Positions 13,383-58,103 of a DNA stretch of 64,000 nucleotides are shown one piece after another. Numbering within the stretch: position 1 is the stretch's first letter; the number at the start of each line of letters is the position of its first letter. The notes under the pieces were generated by a model. That model was not told the origin of the DNA, made no database searches, and saw only the letters and a program-made list of their open reading frames with translations. The stretch lies in the sequence record NC_019521.1; one strand, 5' to 3'. The position numbers and the translations under genes are program-made.

Positions 13383-13427
13383 AAATCGTTATTCAGATTG
13401 AAACGATTTCATATTTGTTAGTATAAT
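13383..13427 (+). promoter_or_regulatory. Class I promoter with short inverted repeat
   Basis: AAATCGTT(13383)/AACGATTT(13402). TGAAAC 13399-13404, TAGTATAAT 13419-13427. Confidence 0.8.
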
Positions 13428-13466
13428 ATATTTCAATACAAATATATTTACACTAATGTCATACAA

Positions 13467-15395
13467 ATGAACGACAAAGATTTTATCGACGACCTAGATG
13501 CGTTATTATCCCCAAAACCTGAAAATGTTTCAACGGAAACTGAAGAAACAAAAGAACTTGTAGAAAAACGTTCAAGGATTCTTGAATGTCTTGATAAAGT
13601 AATCGATAAGCTATGCGAGAATCCTGGAATCTTACGAGAAAGAATCGAACAAACTCAGAAACCTATTATCGAAAAAGCTCTTAACGCTTATATCAAAGGT
13701 GTTAAGAATTACATTGTAGAAGCACCTACAGGTGCTGGTAAATCAATCATTGGATTACTTATTAACGAATCAATCTATCTTTACAACAATAAAGATATTG
13801 CAGCTTATACGTTAACACCTACAAAGATTTTACAGGATCAGTTAGATGAAGACAACAAACGTTTGAATCTTGGATGGGCTTTGTTAAAGGGTCAAGGTAA
13901 TTACATGTGTCTTGAAAACAATGAAAACTTTACGAAAAGAGCTTGCCATAAGTTAGCTATTTCTAAAGCAGCTCAATTACCTTGTGCTGAAACATGTGAA
14001 TACATTCAAAAACGTAAAGCTGCTATTTTGTCACATAACGCTGTATTATCTTACGCTTATTGGTTATCTGCTATGAATTACATGTATAACATGCTTGGAG
14101 ATAATTCACCATTTCAACCGAGAGAAGTTACAGTATTTGATGAATGTCATATGTTAGCTGATACAGTTCAAAGTATGTTTCAAGTTGAAATATCGAATCA
14201 AGTTCAGGATAGAATCGTTAAGCTAATTTCATTCTATGAATCTGTTGAAAAAGATGTTTACAAGCTTGAAAGAATGTTTGGACTCACTAAAGATTTCAAG
14301 AAATGTTTCGATCATCTTTTCAAGATTACTAACGAACAATCATTGAAAGATGTTTACGATACTATGCTAATGACTACAGCATATATTCATAGGATTTCGA
14401 ATATGTTCTTAGACTTCATTCAAGAATATTTTCCTAAGAATACTAACCTTTGGTCTGTTGGTCAACAAGAATTCGATAAGAACTTTGAAAGATTCGCATC
14501 AGTTTCTTCAAACATGAAATTCTTCTTATCAAATAACAAAGATATTGAAAACATTGTTGCAGATAAAACAGTTTTAGATGATGGTACCGTAGTTCTACTA
14601 TTTAGAACTCTTAACGAATCTAGTTTAATGGCTAGACATGTTCATAAGTATACACAATTCGCAGTATGGACTTCAGCTACATTAGGTGGACGTAAAGGTT
14701 TAGAATCTTGGGCTGAACAAAATGGTATTACGAATTACGAATATACTATCATGGAATCTAATTTCGATTTCGAAAATTGTCCTATCAATATCTGTTCACC
14801 TACTATTTCAATGTCATTCAAAGATAAGGCGAATAACATGAATGCTTTAATGATGCGAATCATGACTTTGATCAATTGTCACGAAGATGAACGTGGTATC
14901 ATTCATACTGGTAATTTCGAAATAGCTAGAAATCTTAAGACTCGTACTGAAAAAGGTAATGACAGATTCATTTTCTATAACAATTCATTTGAAAAAGCTC
15001 ACGCTATCGAAGAACTTAAACGTTCTAAAAATGGTATTATCGTTGGACCTTCGTTATCAGAAGGATTGGATTTGAAAGATGATTTAGCCAGATTCGCTAT
15101 TCTCGCTAAAGTACCTTATCCGTCACTAGCTGATTCATTGAACAAATTAAAACTTGAAAGAATTCCAGGATGGTATGATTGGCAAACAGTTGTAACTGTT
15201 CAACAGCAGTTAGGTAGACACGTAAGACATAAAACGGATTGGGGTACAACTTATATGTTAGATTCGGGATTCGAAAGAGTTATAACTAATTCTACATTCC
15301 CGAATTACATTGCTAACCGTTTTACAAAAATCAATGTCAATAAATTAGTAACAGATTTCCAAAATCAAGATTCAGATTTCGATGACTTATACTAA
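13467..15395 (+). CDS. dinG: DinG/Rad3-family (SF2) ATP-dependent helicase with probable Fe-S cluster
   Basis: EAPTGAGKS (Walker A), VFDECH, SATL, SEGLDLKDDLARFAILAKVPYP, QQLGRHVRH. Four-Cys cluster C..C..C...C after motif Ia. Confidence 0.88.
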   Translation: MNDKDFIDDLDALLSPKPENVSTETEETKELVEKRSRILECLDKVIDKLCENPGILRERIEQTQKPIIEKALNAYIKGVKNYIVEAPTGAGKSIIGLLINESIYLYNNKDIAAYTLTPTKILQDQLDEDNKRLNLGWALLKGQGNYMCLENNENFTKRACHKLAISKAAQLPCAETCEYIQKRKAAILSHNAVLSYAYWLSAMNYMYNMLGDNSPFQPREVTVFDECHMLADTVQSMFQVEISNQVQDRIVKLISFYESVEKDVYKLERMFGLTKDFKKCFDHLFKITNEQSLKDVYDTMLMTTAYIHRISNMFLDFIQEYFPKNTNLWSVGQQEFDKNFERFASVSSNMKFFLSNNKDIENIVADKTVLDDGTVVLLFRTLNESSLMARHVHKYTQFAVWTSATLGGRKGLESWAEQNGITNYEYTIMESNFDFENCPINICSPTISMSFKDKANNMNALMMRIMTLINCHEDERGIIHTGNFEIARNLKTRTEKGNDRFIFYNNSFEKAHAIEELKRSKNGIIVGPSLSEGLDLKDDLARFAILAKVPYPSLADSLNKLKLERIPGWYDWQTVVTVQQQLGRHVRHKTDWGTTYMLDSGFERVITNSTFPNYIANRFTKINVNKLVTDFQNQDSDFDDLY

Positions 15396-15666
15396 AATCA
15401 AAGAACAATTCAAAGATCGATACAATCAGATTTGTATCGATCTAATGGAAATGATAATCGAGGAAGTTCTATACATAAACGTTTCTATAAACGAATCCGA
15501 TCAAATGGAAAGCATTTTAGATTCTATGGAACTATCAGCTTTAAGTTCTGTAATCGATAAATACTATCAAGTTTCGATAAGTAATACTGAAATAAGTTAT
15601 AAGACTTTCGAAGAGTTAGTATGTCGAATCATTTACTTACAAGTAACACCACAGTCAAGGTTATGA
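15382..15666 (+). CDS. Acyl carrier protein-like, conserved DS motif retained (Ser48)
   Basis: ILDSMELSALSSVIDKYYQVSISNTEISYKTFEELV aligns by eye to ACP [32 protein letters not shown]. Confidence 0.65.
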   Translation: MTYTKIKEQFKDRYNQICIDLMEMIIEEVLYINVSINESDQMESILDSMELSALSSVIDKYYQVSISNTEISYKTFEELVCRIIYLQVTPQSRL

Positions 15667-15923
15667 AAAAGACACATAGTGAAATCATCTCTACTATAAA
15701 TTCAGATTTAGAAGATTTTATGCGATCTAATAGCATGAATACTAGATTTTCGTATAATGAATATCTTTATAGACTTTGGAGAAGAGAAGATTACGAAGCT
15801 TTCTGTGAACATGTAATACATAAGTACGATGGATATAACATCAAACGTCAGTTTTTCATGACTATGAACACACTTATAACTAATCTAGCGAACAGGGAAA
15901 TTATTAAACAACAAAATTCTTAA
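15663..15923 (+). CDS. Divergent ACP-like paralog (RR at DS position)
   Basis: Start at 15663 gives an ATGA overlap. Same hydrophobic register and C-terminal MTMNTLI as KTFEELV/MTYHDLI. Confidence 0.4.
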   Translation: MKKTHSEIISTINSDLEDFMRSNSMNTRFSYNEYLYRLWRREDYEAFCEHVIHKYDGYNIKRQFFMTMNTLITNLANREIIKQQNS

Positions 15924-15928
15924 AAACT

Positions 15929-16192
15929 ATGATATCAAAGAAACGTTATCAATCAAAATATGACGAAATCAGGTTAGACTTGAATTTCTTCTTAGTAACA
16001 GAATTAGATCAGTCTAAAGACTTACAGGATTCTGATGTTCTAAACAAAGTATTAGATCATATGGAAATTGCTGATTTGAAAGACTATTTAGAATCAGAAT
16101 ATAACTGTAAAGTTGGAATCGATGCTATGACTTATCATGATCTTATCGATCTTCTAACTTTAAGATACTTCGTAAATATAGATTCCGAATAG
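15929..16192 (+). CDS. ACP-like paralog (DH at DS position)
   Basis: LQDSDVLNKVLDHMEI vs INESDQMESILDSMEL; LESEYNCKV vs ACP [9 protein letters not shown]. Confidence 0.6.
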   Translation: MISKKRYQSKYDEIRLDLNFFLVTELDQSKDLQDSDVLNKVLDHMEIADLKDYLESEYNCKVGIDAMTYHDLIDLLTLRYFVNIDSE

Positions 16193-16194
16193 AC

Positions 16195-16506
16195 ATGGAA
16201 AATTTCAAAGAAGTTTGCGATTATCTAAAGTCTGAACTAAAAGAAGTATGTTCTTTAGATTACGAAATATATGCTTACGAAACTCTTTCAGACTTTATCG
16301 ACGATTATGATATCTTGAATTTCATTTCAATAATCAAACATAAGAATCGAGGTTTATGTAATATCGAAGTATCGGATTACAGGAAACTGACATTAACTGA
16401 TATAGCGAACAATATTCTATATAATAAAAATAGATTGGAACTTTTCGATCTATTTTCTAAAGCTAGTAAAAGAATGAGAGAATCTTGTAAAATCTTGTAC
16501 ACGTAA
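16195..16506 (+). CDS. ACP-like paralog (DD at DS position)
   Basis: IYAYETLSDFIDDYDILNFISII...LTLTDIANNI matches the register of its neighbours. Confidence 0.5.
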   Translation: MENFKEVCDYLKSELKEVCSLDYEIYAYETLSDFIDDYDILNFISIIKHKNRGLCNIEVSDYRKLTLTDIANNILYNKNRLELFDLFSKASKRMRESCKILYT

Positions 16507-16523
16507 ACATAAAATATCAAGTT

Positions 16524-16537
16524 TAGTATAATACATA
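16524..16537 (+). promoter_or_regulatory. Overlapping TAGTATAAT and AATACATA elements upstream of nrdH
   Basis: TAGTATAAT 16524-16532 (upstream GTAAAC sits at N15, imperfect). AATACATA 16530-16537. Confidence 0.5.
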
Positions 16538-16567
16538 TAATTCAATATATAAATTCAGACAAAGAAC

Positions 16568-16834
16568 ATGACAGAACCTATCATTACAGTGTTGTCTAAA
16601 AACGGTTGCGTTCCCTGCGAAACTGTTAAAGCTACACTTAAATCGAGTAACATAAAGTTTGAAGAAATCAACTTATTCGATAACGCACATATTGCTACCA
16701 AATTCAAAATTCGAAACGTACCAACTGTAATGTTTACTAATAAACCATTAACAGATGATACAGCTATAGAAGTTTCGGAAAAATTCACAGGTCCTGGAAC
16801 ATTGGACAAAATTCAACAATACGTTTCTAAATAA
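16568..16834 (+). CDS. nrdH: NrdH-like glutaredoxin/thioredoxin
   Basis: CVPC active site, RNVPTV cis-Pro motif, position before nrdI-nrdE. Confidence 0.85.
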   Translation: MTEPIITVLSKNGCVPCETVKATLKSSNIKFEEINLFDNAHIATKFKIRNVPTVMFTNKPLTDDTAIEVSEKFTGPGTLDKIQQYVSK

Positions 16835-17205
16835 TGACTATCGTTTATGACTCAAGGACTGGGAATATTGAACGATTCATTAACAAAGTAAAAGAACAAA
16901 CTGGATGGACTTTCGTTAAGATTGATAAGAATCTTGTCATCGATGAGAAAGTCCATCTTGTTACTTATACTACAGGTTTCGGACACCTCCCAAATCCTAC
17001 AAAGGCTTTTCTAGCAAATCAATCTAATGTAAACAATTTACTTTCTGTATCAGTAAGTGGTAATCGTAACTGGGGACCTAATTTCGGTAAGGCTGGTGAT
17101 ATCATCTCAGATGAATACAACGTTCCGTTACTATTGAAATTCGAATTATCTGGTAATCCCTCTGAAATAGAAGCATTCATTGAAAACATTCAAAAATTCT
17201 CTTAA
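16834..17205 (+). CDS. nrdI: NrdI flavodoxin-like protein (class Ib RNR)
   Basis: IVYDSRTGNIERF, YTTGFG, SGNRNWGPNFG, LLLKFELSG. Confidence 0.95.
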   Translation: MTIVYDSRTGNIERFINKVKEQTGWTFVKIDKNLVIDEKVHLVTYTTGFGHLPNPTKAFLANQSNVNNLLSVSVSGNRNWGPNFGKAGDIISDEYNVPLLLKFELSGNPSEIEAFIENIQKFS

Positions 17206-17211
17206 TACAAT

Positions 17212-19794
17212 ATGAACAATCCTTGGATTTTACTTAACAACCAGCTGTTAAATCGAGCTGAAGGAACAATCGATTTAGAAAAAGACAAAGAAGCCGCGAG
17301 ACAATTCTTCCTAGGATATGTAAACAAGAATATGGTTTGGTTCCATTCGTTACATGAGAAACTATGTCATTTGGTTAACGAAGGTTACTATTTCGATATG
17401 TTTCAGAATTACGAATATGAAGAAATCAAGGAGGTATTTTCATTCGTATATTCTAAGAAATTTCGTTTCCAATCGTATATGGCTGCATTCTTATTTTACA
17501 AGAACTATGCAATGCGTGATGGAGAAACAGATCAATTCTTTGAAAGATATGAAGATCGTATAGCTACAGTAGCATTATATACTTCAATTGATCTTAAAAC
17601 TGGTAAAGGTGATTTACAAAAAGCTTTAGCACAAGCTGAAATCATGATTAATCAGGAATATCAACCTGCTACCCCGACATTCTCAAACGCTGGAAAACTT
17701 AAAGGTGGTGAATTGGTATCATGTTTCTTAGATGAAATCGGTGATTCTAAAGTTGGAATATCCAAATCTATTCAAGCCGCATTGGATTTATCTTCGATGG
17801 GTGGAGGTGTATCGTTTAACGTATCTAAATTACGTGCACGTGGTGAAGCTATTAAAGGAATCGACGGAAGAGCTTCAGGTGTTTTACCAGTAATGAAAAT
17901 CCTTGAAGATGCTTTTTCATATGCTAATCAATTAGGACAACGTCCAGGTGCTGGAGCTGCTTATATCAATATCTTCCATTCAGATGTTGAAGAATTTCTA
18001 GATTCTAAGAAAATCAACGCTGACGAAAAATCACGTCTTAAATCGCTTTCGTTAGGTGTTATCGTTCCTGACAAATTCATGGAATTAGCTGAGAAGGATG
18101 AACCATTTTATGTTTTCTATCCATATACAGTTAAGAAAGAATACGGTAAACATCTAGATGATTTGGATATCGATACAATGTATTCCGAATTAGTTTCTAA
18201 TCCTAATGTTAAGAAACGTAAGTTAAATGCTAGACGTATGTTAACTAAGATTGCACAAGTTCAGAAAGAATCAGGTTATCCATATTTCTTCTTGAAAACT
18301 AATGCTAACGAATATCATCCTTTGAAGAATTTGGGAGACGTTAAGTTTTCTAATTTATGTTTTACTGGTGATACTTTAGTTAACATAATTACTAGAGATG
18401 GTCAATATGTTAAACGTACTATTGAAGATTTATCTACAAATTTCGATCATGAAAAAGAAGGATGTATAACAGTACAGGGTGCGTATTGGTCCGATGATAA
18501 AGGTCAATGGGACTATGAATGGTTTTATGCTACAGCTTTCCAGACAGGTTGGAAAAAAGTAATAAAACTTGAACTATCTAACGGTGGTAATATAAAATGT
18601 ACACCCAATCATGAAATAGCTACAATTCATGGAAAGTATGTCAAGGCTTCAGAATCGATTGGTTCTATTTTAGCTTCAGATTCTAATAATGTATATGTAA
18701 CTGATATTAAAGAATTAAACGAATGTGTTCCAGTGTACGATTTGAATGTACAAGGCCCCCATAATTTTACTATTTCTGTAAGTGATAACGAATCGGTTTT
18801 AGTTCATAACTGTACCGAAATCATGCAATATTCAGAAGTGTCAGAATACAATGATTACGATAAGCAACATAACGATAAAATCAATTACGGTATTTCATGT
18901 AACTTAGGTTCTCTAAACATCGCAACTGTTATGAAGAATTCTAAAGATACTAATCGTTTCGAAAGGATCATAAGTACTGCAATGGATTCTTTAACTCATG
19001 TAACTGATCGAACTAACATTGCTGCTGTTCCTGCTATTGCTAGAGCTAACAAACATTTCAGGTCTGTTGGATTAGGTGCTATGAATTTACATGGTTATCT
19101 TGCACAAAATGAAATCATGTTCGAATCTGATGAAGCTTTAGATTTCGTTAATGTATTCTTCGGAATGGTAAATTACTATTCATTGAAACGTTCCATGGAA
19201 ATTAGTAGAGAACGTGATTGTGACACTTTCGAAGGATTTGATGAATCTGAATATGGAAATGGTAAGTACTTTGACAGATACATAGATAACTTCAATCTAG
19301 AACCTAAATTCGATAAAACTAGTGAGTTATTCGAAGGTATCGAAATTCCAAGTTTACAAGATTGGGTTGACTTAAAGGATGATGTAATGAATTACGGTAT
19401 CTATCATGCATATCGTTTAGCTATTGCACCTAACCAGTCAACAGCTTACATTATGTCAGCCACTCCTTCGATAATGCCAATATCTGATCAAGTTGAAGTA
19501 CGTGAATATGATCATTCGACAACCTTTTATCCTATGCCTGGAATGAACGATGATAACATGTTCTTCTATAAATCAGCATACGATATGGATCAGTTTAAGG
19601 TATTACGTTTAGTATCAGTTATTCAACGTCATATCGATCAAGGAATTTCATGTATTTTACATACAAATTCTGAAGATGATACCGCATTAATGGCAAGATA
19701 TTACATCTACGCTTGGAAGATGAAACTGAAATCGTTGTATTATACACGAACTCGTAAATCCTCTATTGACGGATGTATATCCTGTTCAGCTTAA
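17212..19794 (+). CDS. nrdE: Class Ib ribonucleotide reductase alpha subunit, intein-containing
   Basis: YQPATPTF, LVSCFL, GGGV, SNL|intein|CTEI, CNLGSLN, AIAPNQS, C-terminal CISC. No ATP cone. Confidence 0.97.
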   Translation: MNNPWILLNNQLLNRAEGTIDLEKDKEAARQFFLGYVNKNMVWFHSLHEKLCHLVNEGYYFDMFQNYEYEEIKEVFSFVYSKKFRFQSYMAAFLFYKNYAMRDGETDQFFERYEDRIATVALYTSIDLKTGKGDLQKALAQAEIMINQEYQPATPTFSNAGKLKGGELVSCFLDEIGDSKVGISKSIQAALDLSSMGGGVSFNVSKLRARGEAIKGIDGRASGVLPVMKILEDAFSYANQLGQRPGAGAAYINIFHSDVEEFLDSKKINADEKSRLKSLSLGVIVPDKFMELAEKDEPFYVFYPYTVKKEYGKHLDDLDIDTMYSELVSNPNVKKRKLNARRMLTKIAQVQKESGYPYFFLKTNANEYHPLKNLGDVKFSNLCFTGDTLVNIITRDGQYVKRTIEDLSTNFDHEKEGCITVQGAYWSDDKGQWDYEWFYATAFQTGWKKVIKLELSNGGNIKCTPNHEIATIHGKYVKASESIGSILASDSNNVYVTDIKELNECVPVYDLNVQGPHNFTISVSDNESVLVHNCTEIMQYSEVSEYNDYDKQHNDKINYGISCNLGSLNIATVMKNSKDTNRFERIISTAMDSLTHVTDRTNIAAVPAIARANKHFRSVGLGAMNLHGYLAQNEIMFESDEALDFVNVFFGMVNYYSLKRSMEISRERDCDTFEGFDESEYGNGKYFDRYIDNFNLEPKFDKTSELFEGIEIPSLQDWVDLKDDVMNYGIYHAYRLAIAPNQSTAYIMSATPSIMPISDQVEVREYDHSTTFYPMPGMNDDNMFFYKSAYDMDQFKVLRLVSVIQRHIDQGISCILHTNSEDDTALMARYYIYAWKMKLKSLYYTRTRKSSIDGCISCSA
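18358..18810 (+). mobile_element. Mini-intein (151 aa, residues 383-533) in NrdE
   Basis: CFTGDT (block A), KCTPNHEI (block B), VYDLNVQGPHNF (block F), VLVHN/C (block G). No room for an endonuclease. Confidence 0.95.
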
Positions 19795-19799
19795 AAACT

Positions 19800-19841
19800 A
19801 AACCCATGTAACTGAAACTTACATGGGTTTCTTAGTAAGAT
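19800..19841 (+). promoter_or_regulatory. Hairpin-embedded class I promoter, family B copy 1
   Basis: AAACCCATGTAA-CTGAAAC-TTACATGGGTTT. TGAAAC 19813-19818, TAGTAAGAT 19833-19841. Confidence 0.85.
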
Positions 19842-54197: not shown

Positions 54198-57100
54198 ATG
54201 CTAAAAATTCTACATCTATCCGACATCCAAATCGAGATTCGGAGAAATTCACAAAGATATGATGAATATGCTAGCGCATTAGAAGAAGTCATATCTTATG
54301 CTAAATCAAATTTAGATATTTCAAAGGTTGTACTTTCTGGTGACATTTTCGAATTCTGTGCAGTTACTGACACTGAACGCGTGATGTTTATCAGATTCAT
54401 TAAAACTTTAGAAAGTATCGAAACTATTAATGAAATCGTTATCACTTCCGGAAATCATGATTTGAAACAACGTTTTAACGATATCAACATTTCTGGTGTG
54501 TCAGTTATCGAAAATTCGGTAATGGATTCGTTACATGAATCATTCAAGGAATCTAGTAAGATTAAAGTTCTTACGAAATCAGGTTTTTATCCTTCAAATA
54601 CTGTTGGATTAAATTGGGGTGCATGGGCACATGAACATAAGTTCGATGGAAACATTGAAAACTATAGCCCATGGGAACGTGAAGTTGTAATAGAACCTAA
54701 AAATGTTATTGAGATTTATCATGACAATTTCGCTGGTGCTATGAACTTCAATGGATTAATTCAGAAAGGTTGTGAAGATGCTAAGAGTTTTGACATGTTT
54801 AAAGCTAAAACGATATTAGCTGGACATATTCATAATCCTCAACAATTCAAATCTGATTCGAATCAAACATTTACTTACGCTTCATCATTAGTGATGCGTG
54901 ATTTCGGTGAAGGTGATTATTATCTTAACGGTAACAGGACAGTCAAAGGTTTACAGAATCATGGTTTCTATGTACATACTATCGACACTAATGATTATTC
55001 TACAGTAAGTTCAGAATTCATTCCAGTAGATTGTTATACTACTAGAGCTACATTCTTAATCGATAAGAACTTTAATTGGGAGACTATTAACGATCTAAGA
55101 TTAGATTACGTTTCGAAATACAAAAACATGTTACGTATTGTCGTAACTGGAAACGAATCTAAATATCATGAAAAATCTGCAGAAATCTTACAAGCTATTT
55201 CTAGGAACGTACCAAATCTTGAAGTATCTATTGATATTGATTCTTCAAATATCTTTTCTGAAACATCAGAAGACTTGGATTTAGAACTTGACAAATTAGT
55301 TACAGAAGAGCAAATACTCGATATCGCTATTCCATTTATCAAAAGACGTATTCGTTCTACTAAACGTATTCTTGAAGAGGATAAAGACAATGCTGAAACT
55401 ACAACAATCGAATTGTTCAAAACTCAGTTATTGAAACTACGTAAAACTATCGAACGTAATCATATTACTTTTCATAATCTTACAGTTTCGAACTTCTTAT
55501 CTTTCGAAGACAATGTAAATATAGATTTTAGTAAATTACGTTCTTTGGTTAAGATTTCTGGAACTAATGGTATCGGTAAGACTAATATCATGAAAACGTT
55601 AAAATGGATTGTTGATGATTTGATCGATGGTTCACAAGCACGTAATTCAGTGAATCAAAACGCTTTAGACGTATTTAACGATAAACGTTTAGATACGAAT
55701 TTAGTTGAATCAACTTTCGTTTTCAGTCGTAATGGTAAGAAATATACTTTGAAGAAATCGATAGAAAGATTCTTTAAATCACGTTCTAAGGATATTACTG
55801 TACATAACTGGAAAGAACATATCAAGAATCTAACGATTTCTAAAGAACTATTGATACAGTCTTCGAATTCCGAAGAAACATTAACAGATTTGGATTTGAT
55901 TCAAAATGAATTACGTGAAATCTTTGGTTCTGTACATGACATGGAAGCTTTGTTATTCACTAACGCTAATTCTTTAGAACGATTAGTTAAATCTAATCCT
56001 GATGTATTAGCTGATCAAATCATGCATCACTTAGGTTTGAGATATTTTCAGGATATGAGTAACGATTATGAAAATGTCAGAACTGAGAAATTGAAAACTT
56101 TAAGTAAACCTTCGAAATCTATAGAAGCTATGGTTTTAGAACTTGAAGATTTCAAGGAAACTAAGACAAATGGTTCTAATATCGTTAAGTCATTAACCGA
56201 ACAAAAAGAAATCGATTCTTTAAAAATAGCTACGAAGCATTCAGAGATTAACGAATTACGTGAAACTTTACATCAAGTTGAAAATCCTGAAATGTTAGAA
56301 ACTAATATCGAAAGTACTAGTAAAGATATCGAAACTAAGACTAACGATTTGGAACTTGTTCATACTGGTATGAAAACCTTGTCAGATGCTTTAGCTTTGG
56401 ATTACAAGAATTTCGATGCGATAATCGATGAATATAATTCTGAAATCAAAACTATAGAAAATGAAATATCAGAATTAAACAATTCTGTTAAGTTAGAAGC
56501 TTCGAATCTTGAAACTGAGAAACAAAAGGTTCTGACAATAACTGAATCAGTTAAATCAGAAATGAATTCTGAAATCAATAACAGATATTCTTCGAAAACT
56601 GAAACATTGAATTCAGAACTTAAATCTAAAGAAAACGAAAAGAATACAGTTCTAACGTTATTACGTGAAGCTAAACATGAGTTTGAACTTAAACGTAATC
56701 AAAAGAAATCTGAATTCGAAACTTCATTATCTGATGCTAAGAAGAAAGCGGAAACTCTTGTAGAATTAATCGATACTAATACGGGATTGATTACAGTATA
56801 TGAAACTGCTACAACTTGTAAAACTTGTGGAAATGCTATTACTGGTAAAGCTTTAGAAGAAATTCAAAATCGTAAGAATGAATGTCAAGTAAAGATTAAC
56901 GAATCTAGAAATGATTTAAATGAAGTTTACGAAGCTATCAAAATTATAGAATCTGAATTAGCTAAACCATATTATAGTATAGAACCTAATGCTTGGTTAA
57001 CTGAGAATTGTGCTGATAATTTGAAATTGGCTAGAAGTCTTACAGATACTATAACTGATATCGAAAAACAAATAAAAGAGATTAACGATGAGAAACAAAA

Positions 57101-58103
57101 AGAAATCGATTCGATTATCGAAAAGGTCAAAGAGTCTAAGAAAGTTATTGACGCTATCGAAAGTTATAAGATTAGAAAAACCTCTTATGATGGGTTCAAT
57201 CAAACTACTATCGATACAATCTCTCGTAAATCGGATCAGGTTGAAGAGATTAATGGAAAGATTTCGATAGTTAAGAAACAAAAACTTGATTACGATACTA
57301 AATCGAAATCGTTAGTTGATCTGAAATTAAAGGTTCCAGAGTTAACAAACATAATCGAAAATCTTAAATCGAAACTTGAAAGATTCAAATCTGATCTCGA
57401 AAAGATGTATCAGAATAAGGAAGTTCAGGAAAAGATAAAACTTCAAGAATTGTATTTGTCACAGATGGAATCGAATCTTAACGAAACTGTTGAAAATCTA
57501 CAAATGTATATCAGGAAAGTTGAAAACGCTACTAACAGTATCAATGATTTAGAAACTGACATACAAGATTCGATTAACTATCGTGTTATGGAATCATCGT
57601 TAGCGATATACAAAACTTTCATAGGTAAATCTGGATTGAATAAATTGATATTCGATGCAGTTTCTAAGAAGTTGAATCTTCATATGAACGATTTACTTAA
57701 GGATTCACCTTACAAGTTAGCTTTCGTAAACGGTGTTCTACATCTTATCGATTCGACTAATATCGAAACTCCTGTAACAAGAACAGCTCCAGCTTTCTCA
57801 GGTATGCAAATCATACTTGGTGGATTATCATTATTCTACGTTTTACGAAATGCTTCATTAGGTACGAAATATGATTGTGTATTTATTGATGAGATTTCAG
57901 GACCTTTGAATGACGGTAAGGAATTAACATACAAAGCTATAAATTACAAACAGTTACTAATCGATATGATAGCTAAAATGAGAGAATCTTCAAAGGTTTT
58001 CATTGTAGATCATTATCTGGATTTTTACGATGGTTCTATTCTTGAAGTTTATCCTTCTAATGATGGATCGAATATCAAGGAAATCTTAGTTCCACAAGCT
58101 TAA
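54198..58103 (+). CDS. Fused SbcD-SbcC (Mre11-Rad50; T4 gp47-gp46-like) nuclease-ATPase
   Basis: LHLSDIQ, SGDIFE, SGNHD, AGHIH (phosphoesterase). GTNGIGKT (Walker A), long coiled coil with CKTC hook, FSGMQ signature, FIDE, IVDH. Confidence 0.92.
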   Translation: MLKILHLSDIQIEIRRNSQRYDEYASALEEVISYAKSNLDISKVVLSGDIFEFCAVTDTERVMFIRFIKTLESIETINEIVITSGNHDLKQRFNDINISGVSVIENSVMDSLHESFKESSKIKVLTKSGFYPSNTVGLNWGAWAHEHKFDGNIENYSPWEREVVIEPKNVIEIYHDNFAGAMNFNGLIQKGCEDAKSFDMFKAKTILAGHIHNPQQFKSDSNQTFTYASSLVMRDFGEGDYYLNGNRTVKGLQNHGFYVHTIDTNDYSTVSSEFIPVDCYTTRATFLIDKNFNWETINDLRLDYVSKYKNMLRIVVTGNESKYHEKSAEILQAISRNVPNLEVSIDIDSSNIFSETSEDLDLELDKLVTEEQILDIAIPFIKRRIRSTKRILEEDKDNAETTTIELFKTQLLKLRKTIERNHITFHNLTVSNFLSFEDNVNIDFSKLRSLVKISGTNGIGKTNIMKTLKWIVDDLIDGSQARNSVNQNALDVFNDKRLDTNLVESTFVFSRNGKKYTLKKSIERFFKSRSKDITVHNWKEHIKNLTISKELLIQSSNSEETLTDLDLIQNELREIFGSVHDMEALLFTNANSLERLVKSNPDVLADQIMHHLGLRYFQDMSNDYENVRTEKLKTLSKPSKSIEAMVLELEDFKETKTNGSNIVKSLTEQKEIDSLKIATKHSEINELRETLHQVENPEMLETNIESTSKDIETKTNDLELVHTGMKTLSDALALDYKNFDAIIDEYNSEIKTIENEISELNNSVKLEASNLETEKQKVLTITESVKSEMNSEINNRYSSKTETLNSELKSKENEKNTVLTLLREAKHEFELKRNQKKSEFETSLSDAKKKAETLVELIDTNTGLITVYETATTCKTCGNAITGKALEEIQNRKNECQVKINESRNDLNEVYEAIKIIESELAKPYYSIEPNAWLTENCADNLKLARSLTDTITDIEKQIKEINDEKQKEIDSIIEKVKESKKVIDAIESYKIRKTSYDGFNQTTIDTISRKSDQVEEINGKISIVKKQKLDYDTKSKSLVDLKLKVPELTNIIENLKSKLERFKSDLEKMYQNKEVQEKIKLQELYLSQMESNLNETVENLQMYIRKVENATNSINDLETDIQDSINYRVMESSLAIYKTFIGKSGLNKLIFDAVSKKLNLHMNDLLKDSPYKLAFVNGVLHLIDSTNIETPVTRTAPAFSGMQIILGGLSLFYVLRNASLGTKYDCVFIDEISGPLNDGKELTYKAINYKQLLIDMIAKMRESSKVFIVDHYLDFYDGSILEVYPSNDGSNIKEILVPQA

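Follow-up and report, generated by a model that had tools for sequence, protein, structure and literature searches.

Divergent, putative carrier-protein paralogues gp240 and gp242 of phage PAU and their two small orphan neighbors

Carrier proteins of phages and the PAU locus

Acyl carrier proteins (ACPs) have been described as rare in phages (PMC7760394), and a 2026 report describes Flavobacterium jumbophages in which ACP genes are duplicated within a "host-interface island" (PMC13573597). Here we describe four small open reading frames (ORFs), gp240, gp241, gp242 and gp243, of Sphingomonas phage PAU (NC_019521 / JQ362498, 219,372 bp), whose host strain HER1398 has been reclassified as Sphingobacterium, in the Bacteroidota (PMC3738902). 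The window, the whole stretch of DNA that was analyzed, is the final 64 kb of this genome, with 100% identity over positions 13400-17300, and a window coordinate equals the record coordinate minus 155,372. In the PAU annotation the four ORFs carry these numbers only and no functional names. A first-pass annotation had read them, from an alignment made by eye, as an array of four ACP-like paralogues, one of them functional and three without the modifiable serine, which might act as decoys or redirect lipid synthesis. Our results point to a smaller system. With a probability of roughly 0.6, gp240 and gp242 form a lineage-specific, divergent pair of carrier proteins, flanked by the orphans gp241 and gp243, that acts on carrier-dependent machinery of the host.

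The closest described proteins are stand-alone type II carriers of the PF00550 family, such as PltL, PigG and two metagenomic carriers (P0004 and P0006), which were the best matches for the pair in every search. The likeness includes a length of about 90 residues, an acidic isoelectric point (pI), the sequence I-L-D-S-M at the start of helix II and the hydrophobic pattern that follows through helix IV. Unlike these carriers, gp240 scores under the Pfam cut-off and gp242 has no serine.

PAU shares with the Flavobacterium jumbophages the duplication of a carrier-type gene in a jumbo phage of a Bacteroidota host (PMC13573597). Carrier duplication in Bacteroidota phages has a precedent, and the earlier statement that no such array had been described needs softening in view of that report. 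However, the known phage ACPs are recognizably AcpP-like, whereas the PAU pair shows much greater divergence and one of its copies lacks the serine. The PAU pair also lies in a replication/nucleotide module, while the phage ACPs are found among secreted/lipoprotein genes; the Flavobacterium FKo-2 phages are compared here by their published description. Canonical AcpP-like genes were present in 24 of 50,697 phage records, always in single copy; PAU is not among these records. A carrier without the modifiable serine is known from Plasmodium falciparum, whose mitochondrial ACP is serine-less, cannot be phosphopantetheinylated and works as a protein-binding subunit (PMC8547962). It provides a functional model for gp242 as a putative carrier fold without a modifiable serine. 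The Plasmodium protein, however, comes from a eukaryote and has the LYR protein Isd11 as its partner (PMC8547962), while PAU shows no LYR-family protein.

The gp240/gp242 pair

The four adjacent ORFs of 86-103 residues are present exactly as first described, and their coding nature is supported by codon usage: for 4 of 4 ORFs the log-odds are above zero in the annotated frame and below zero in both alternative frames. The peptide strings that had been compared by eye, and the residues Ser48, Arg41, His44 and Asp37 picked out in them, are all correct against the translations. The stop of gp240 and the start of gp241 overlap as ATGA, and spacers of 5 and 2 nucleotides (nt) separate gp241 from gp242 and gp242 from gp243. 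An alternative start of gp241, an ATG at 15621, would give a protein of 100 residues.

Pairwise Smith-Waterman scores were set against 2000 shuffles per pair. The gp240-gp242 alignment reached a score of 83 (z 8.8, equaled by 0 of 2000 shuffles, Gumbel P ~7e-6), and among 97 small PAU proteins these two are reciprocal top matches by a wide margin. The gp240-gp243 alignment is borderline (score 54, z 3.8, P ~0.004), and the remaining four are at background: gp240-gp241 (z 1.6), gp242-gp243 (z 1.0), gp241-gp242 (z 0.3) and gp241-gp243 (z -0.3). By these sequence comparisons, significant paralogy is limited to gp240 and gp242. The single register that had been proposed for the four ORFs thus holds for this pair (z 8.8), fails for gp241 (z -0.3 to 1.6) and is borderline for gp243 (P ~0.004); mutual similarity of the whole set reduces to one significant pair, one borderline pair and four at background. 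The DNA of the four genes contains only short chance repeats, so that a tandem duplication of recent date was rejected, and a duplicated module of two genes (carrier plus partner, present twice) was rejected on the z of -0.3 between gp241 and gp243. A hidden Markov model (HMM) of gp240 and gp242 also matched gp117 (13 bits), a candidate for a further PAU paralogue; the match is spurious, gp117 being a GmrSD_N/DUF262-type protein. gp117 and gp118 (record positions 92544-93736 of PAU, outside the window) are tandem paralogues with the GmrSD_N/DUF262-type motif IDGKQRL.

The relation to carriers was found by several routes. The top Pfam match of gp240 is PP-binding (PF00550; E 0.0033, 18.1 bits) and its sole NCBIfam match is the acyl carrier protein AmcB (E 0.027). 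A two-sequence profile built from gp240 and gp242, here called A2, retrieved nine chains from the PDB at E<=10. Six of the nine are named carriers (PltL twice, PigG, one peptidyl carrier and two ACPs), and two further chains, 2lki and 6cxt, align on the LDSM/LDSL motif. Against 1.84 billion representative proteins, the A2 profile gave one genuine non-self match, P0004 (E 7.3e-5), a bona fide PP-binding protein of 90 residues (PF00550 at E 8.5e-10). The other listed match, P0005, was rejected as a repeat protein matching in four short stretches. Aligned by hhalign with P0004 and its relative P0006, the A2 profile reached a probability of 91% (E 9e-7, 67 columns) with the motif in register. Each protein was also aligned alone: gp240 gave 82% probability (P 9.8e-6) with Ser48 on the carrier serine, and gp242 gave 34% (P 4.3e-4, 69 columns) with His44 at the same place. 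The serine of D-S-[LMI] at the N-terminus of helix II is therefore kept in gp240 only, His44 standing in its place in gp242; the positions that had been aligned with it in gp241 and gp243 hold Arg41 and Asp37. In gp242, Ser and Thr are absent from NKVLDHMEIADL. Both proteins are acidic (Table 1), the median pI of small PAU proteins being 6.6.

Statistically supported, full-length and in-register homology to PF00550 members was obtained for gp240 and gp242 only. Their homology to the carrier superfamily is well supported by these profile searches and very probable. Their nearest kin is among stand-alone type II carriers of the PltL/PigG kind and not the AcpP of fatty-acid synthesis. The first-pass observation that the first and third ORFs are ACP-like is thus upheld by profile searches and hhalign, with gp240 as the carrier-like member that has its serine in place and gp242 as its paralogue with histidine.

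Table 1. Genes of the region, in window coordinates (aa, amino acid residues; pI, isoelectric point; RNR, ribonucleotide reductase)
Feature	Position	Strand	Description
gp239, Rad3/XPD-like DNA helicase	13467..15395	+	Pfam Helicase_C_2, ResIII, DEAD; overlaps gp240 start by 14 nt
gp240	15382..15666	+	94 aa, pI 4.4; very probable divergent stand-alone carrier-protein homologue, D47-S48-M49 intact; Ser48 codon 15523-15525
gp241	15663..15923	+	86 aa from annotated ATG, pI 7.9; predicted small four-helix orphan; no detectable carrier likeness
gp242	15929..16192	+	87 aa, pI 4.5; gp240 paralogue; His44 codon 16058-16060 at carrier-serine position
gp243	16195..16506	+	103 aa, pI 5.2; predicted small helical orphan, possibly a very remote third member
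nrdH, nrdI, nrdE (with intein)	16568..19794	+	Pfam Glutaredoxin, Flavodoxin_NdrI, RNR domains, Intein_splicing; immediately 3' of gp243

The pair seems to be confined to PAU. In a search of 5.8 billion proteins gp240 matched itself only, and the A2 profile found no further relatives of the pair among the 1.84 billion representative proteins. A tblastn search of phages with gp240 gave chance matches only; the one in phAPEC6 falls inside a 314-residue hypothetical protein. Helicases orthologous to gp239, the gene just upstream, are encoded by jumbophages of Tenacibaculum and Chryseobacterium and at 78 IMG/VR loci. In Tenacibaculum phages PTm1 and pT24 and in Chryseobacterium phage MA9V-2, the small ORFs 3' of this helicase gene were considered as syntenic counterparts and are unrelated. 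From the 78 related-helicase loci of IMG/VR, 2,909 small ORFs were compared, and 0 match the carrier profiles, gp241 or gp243.

Partner enzymes were sought by scanning 289 ORFs, essentially the entire PAU genome, against Pfam (E<=1e-3). There was no phosphopantetheinyl transferase (PPTase), AMP-binding, ketosynthase, acyltransferase or condensation domain among the matches listed. The association with loading or using enzymes that is typical of PF00550 carriers was not found in PAU. The genes of P0004 and P0006 both adjoin AMP-binding (adenylating) enzymes, while PAU encodes no recognizable adenylating enzyme or PPTase. Since PAU has no recognizable partner enzymes, any carrier chemistry would depend on enzymes of the host.

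gp241, gp243 and the extent of the family

The two remaining proteins behave differently from the pair. For gp241, single-sequence AlphaFold (AF2) gave a best model with a predicted local distance difference test score (pLDDT) of 83.2 and a predicted template modeling score of 0.67, the other models having pLDDT of 51-71. The best model has four helices (residues 5-22, 31-39, 44-54 and 60-84); it is a single-sequence prediction, and such models can be wrong. Foldseek of this model against 350,542 PDB chains found nothing at E<=0.001, and 0 of its 27 weak matches is a carrier of the ACP or peptidyl carrier protein (PCP) kind. In BFVD only the entry of gp241 itself, H9NCB8, was matched (template modeling score 0.86). 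Searches in Pfam (E<=10, where gp243 was also without a match), PHROG, the PDB and the carrier profiles gave no signal, and hhalign of gp241 against carrier profiles gave a probability of ~0.2% or less. The proposal that gp241 is a copy with the ACP fold is not supported, either by these searches or by the fairly confident predicted model, which matched no carrier in the PDB. gp241 does contain the tripeptide L-Y-R (residues 35-37, window 15765-15773) within YLYRLWRR, recalling the ACP-binding LYR proteins. Its candidacy as an LYR-motif protein was rejected, with no Pfam LYR match, no BLASTP alignment to LYRM4 and no LYRM among the Foldseek matches.

For gp243, the AF2 model (pLDDT 52.7) is too poor for a judgment of the fold, and its Foldseek output is meaningless. 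The search of 5.8 billion proteins returned gp243 itself only, and hhalign against carrier profiles gave ~0.2% or less. The A2 profile compared by hhalign with gp241 and with gp243 gave a probability of <=0.4% each, and the HMM of gp240 and gp242 run over the PAU ORFs had neither of them among the top-ranked. When gp243 was added to the A2 profile, the matches dropped to three, of which only 2lki is carrier-like and with a lower score; with gp241 and gp243 both added, the score of 2lki fell further.

These results bear on how many of the four genes belong together. Their similar sizes, their adjacency and their common strand would suit an origin of all four by tandem duplication of an ACP-fold gene, one copy functional and three turned into non-modifiable mimics that have diverged past sequence recognition; the helix order of the gp241 and gp243 models, broadly reminiscent of helix I / loop / helix II / helix IV, and the full-length alignment of gp243 with gp240 can also be read in this way. 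We regard this origin as improbable. gp241 is at background against the other three and against carrier profiles, it is not acidic (Table 1), and its model finds no match among the many ACPs and PCPs of the PDB; gp243 fails with HMM and hhalign, its inclusion in the profile, with or without gp241, weakens the carrier matches, and a repeat at the DNA level is absent. The proposed array of four is better described as a pair, with gp241 showing no similarity and gp243 unassignable. A family of three, with gp243 as a carrier-fold paralogue bearing an extra C-terminal helix and gp241 as an unrelated insert, fares somewhat better and yet remains doubtful. The gp240-gp243 alignment covers 75 residues, full-length and in the proposed register, with Asp37 in the serine column; gp240 is the best match of gp243 among the small PAU proteins, gp243 is mildly acidic, and adjacency increases the prior for paralogy. 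However, gp243 ranks second for gp240 among the 97 proteins only level with the unrelated gp24, whose alignment is partial and covers the N-terminal half of gp240, profile support is absent and the quality of the model precludes a judgment. gp243 is thus a weak candidate for a third, diverged member of the carrier family, a possibility raised by the pairwise alignment.

A further view is that none of the four is related to carriers, gp240 and gp242 being ordinary small acidic helical orphans, paralogous to each other, with a likeness to carriers that is convergent or due to chance. Several results speak for it and weigh against a carrier pair. All database matches have low absolute scores (13-39 bits); gp240, at 18.1 bits, stays below the PF00550 gathering cut-off of 20.8, and gp242 alone has no Pfam match at E<=10. 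PAU has no recognizable partner genes, and no other genome searched contains the family; because neither gp240 nor gp242 has homologues in any search, the conservation of Ser48 is not assessable. Nevertheless, Pfam, NCBIfam, the PDB, the library of 1.84 billion proteins and hhalign independently agree on both the family and the register, and the library E-value of 7e-5 is already corrected for database size. We consider a chance likeness unlikely, and prefer the reading of gp240 and gp242 as a divergent carrier pair.

Genomic context and possible roles

The four genes lie in a run without gaps between a helicase gene and genes of ribonucleotide reduction (Table 1). In the helicase, cysteines C148, C160, C173 and C177 are invariant across Bacteroidota-phage orthologues, the pattern of iron-sulfur (Fe-S) helicases of the XPD/DinG type. 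The gene nrdF is located farther downstream of nrdE. The best sigma-70-like site of the region is TTGAAA-18-TATAAT (13398-13427, 11 of 12 positions), in the gap of 162 nt 5' of the helicase. A hairpin with a 12-bp stem follows nrdE (19800-19830), and no terminator-like sites were found between 13398 and ~19800. Sigma-70 sites are not enriched (41 found, 44 expected from shuffles), so that the scan is a weak hint of an operon, and the consensus excludes Bacteroidota- or phage-specific promoters. One transcription unit running from the helicase through gp240-gp243 to nrdHIE is plausible. Because they adjoin the Fe-S helicase gene and nrdHIE without gaps, the four genes are probably co-produced in the phase of replication and nucleotide metabolism.

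Other features were observed in PAU. NrdE (window 17212-19794, 860 residues) contains a mini-intein of ~150 residues (CFTGDTLV...VLVHNC) after KFSNL; Pfam Intein_splicing was matched (E 4.3e-8) in the scan covering this ORF. gp288 (window 54198-58100, 1301 residues) is annotated as a metallo-phosphoesterase, and the Pfam scan of the window contained a Metallophos match. Outside the window there are dTDP (deoxythymidine diphosphate)-sugar pathway genes (NTP_transferase, dehydratase, 3,5-epimerase and FdtA-like), three Glyco_transf_7C proteins, two thymidylate-synthase homologues and one dCMP (deoxycytidine monophosphate) deaminase. These genes may serve DNA or surface-sugar modification.

In the reading that we prefer, gp240 and gp242 would be two paralogues, specific to this lineage, that belong to the phosphopantetheine-binding carrier superfamily but diverge strongly within it, and they would be nearest to stand-alone type II carriers. 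With its D-S-M serine (Ser48), gp240 could become holo, a conversion that would need a host enzyme since PAU has no PPTase; once converted by a host PPTase, it would serve as a carrier, either a substitute or a competitor. gp242 has His44 in place of the serine and so would attach no cofactor and act by binding only; permanently apo, it would bind partners without delivering cargo. gp241 and gp243 would be small helical orphans between and after the pair, of which paralogy is not demonstrable. Action of the pair on host carrier-dependent machinery is suggested by the lack of phage partner enzymes, and any specific host target, whether lipid, secondary or envelope metabolism or a regulatory or defense hub, is much less probable than this general role. 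The four translationally coupled genes might also encode one complex, in which the carrier gp240 and the apo mimic gp242, each held by a helical adaptor (gp241 and gp243), dock during replication on host carrier-dependent hubs such as a PPTase, a cysteine desulfurase, a stringent-response enzyme or a defense sensor. We hold this scheme to be very improbable; if true, it would be a phage "ACP-mimicry" takeover or anti-defense module without a described counterpart.

The reduction of the array to a pair keeps a four-member "ACP-mimic array", based on an alignment by eye, out of annotation. Carriers are rare in phages, and the PAU pair, with one potentially modifiable and one serine-less member and no recognizable partner enzymes of its own, would be a compact system. 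It permits a direct test of whether phage carrier-fold proteins work as carriers of cargo or as mimics that bind the machinery of the host.

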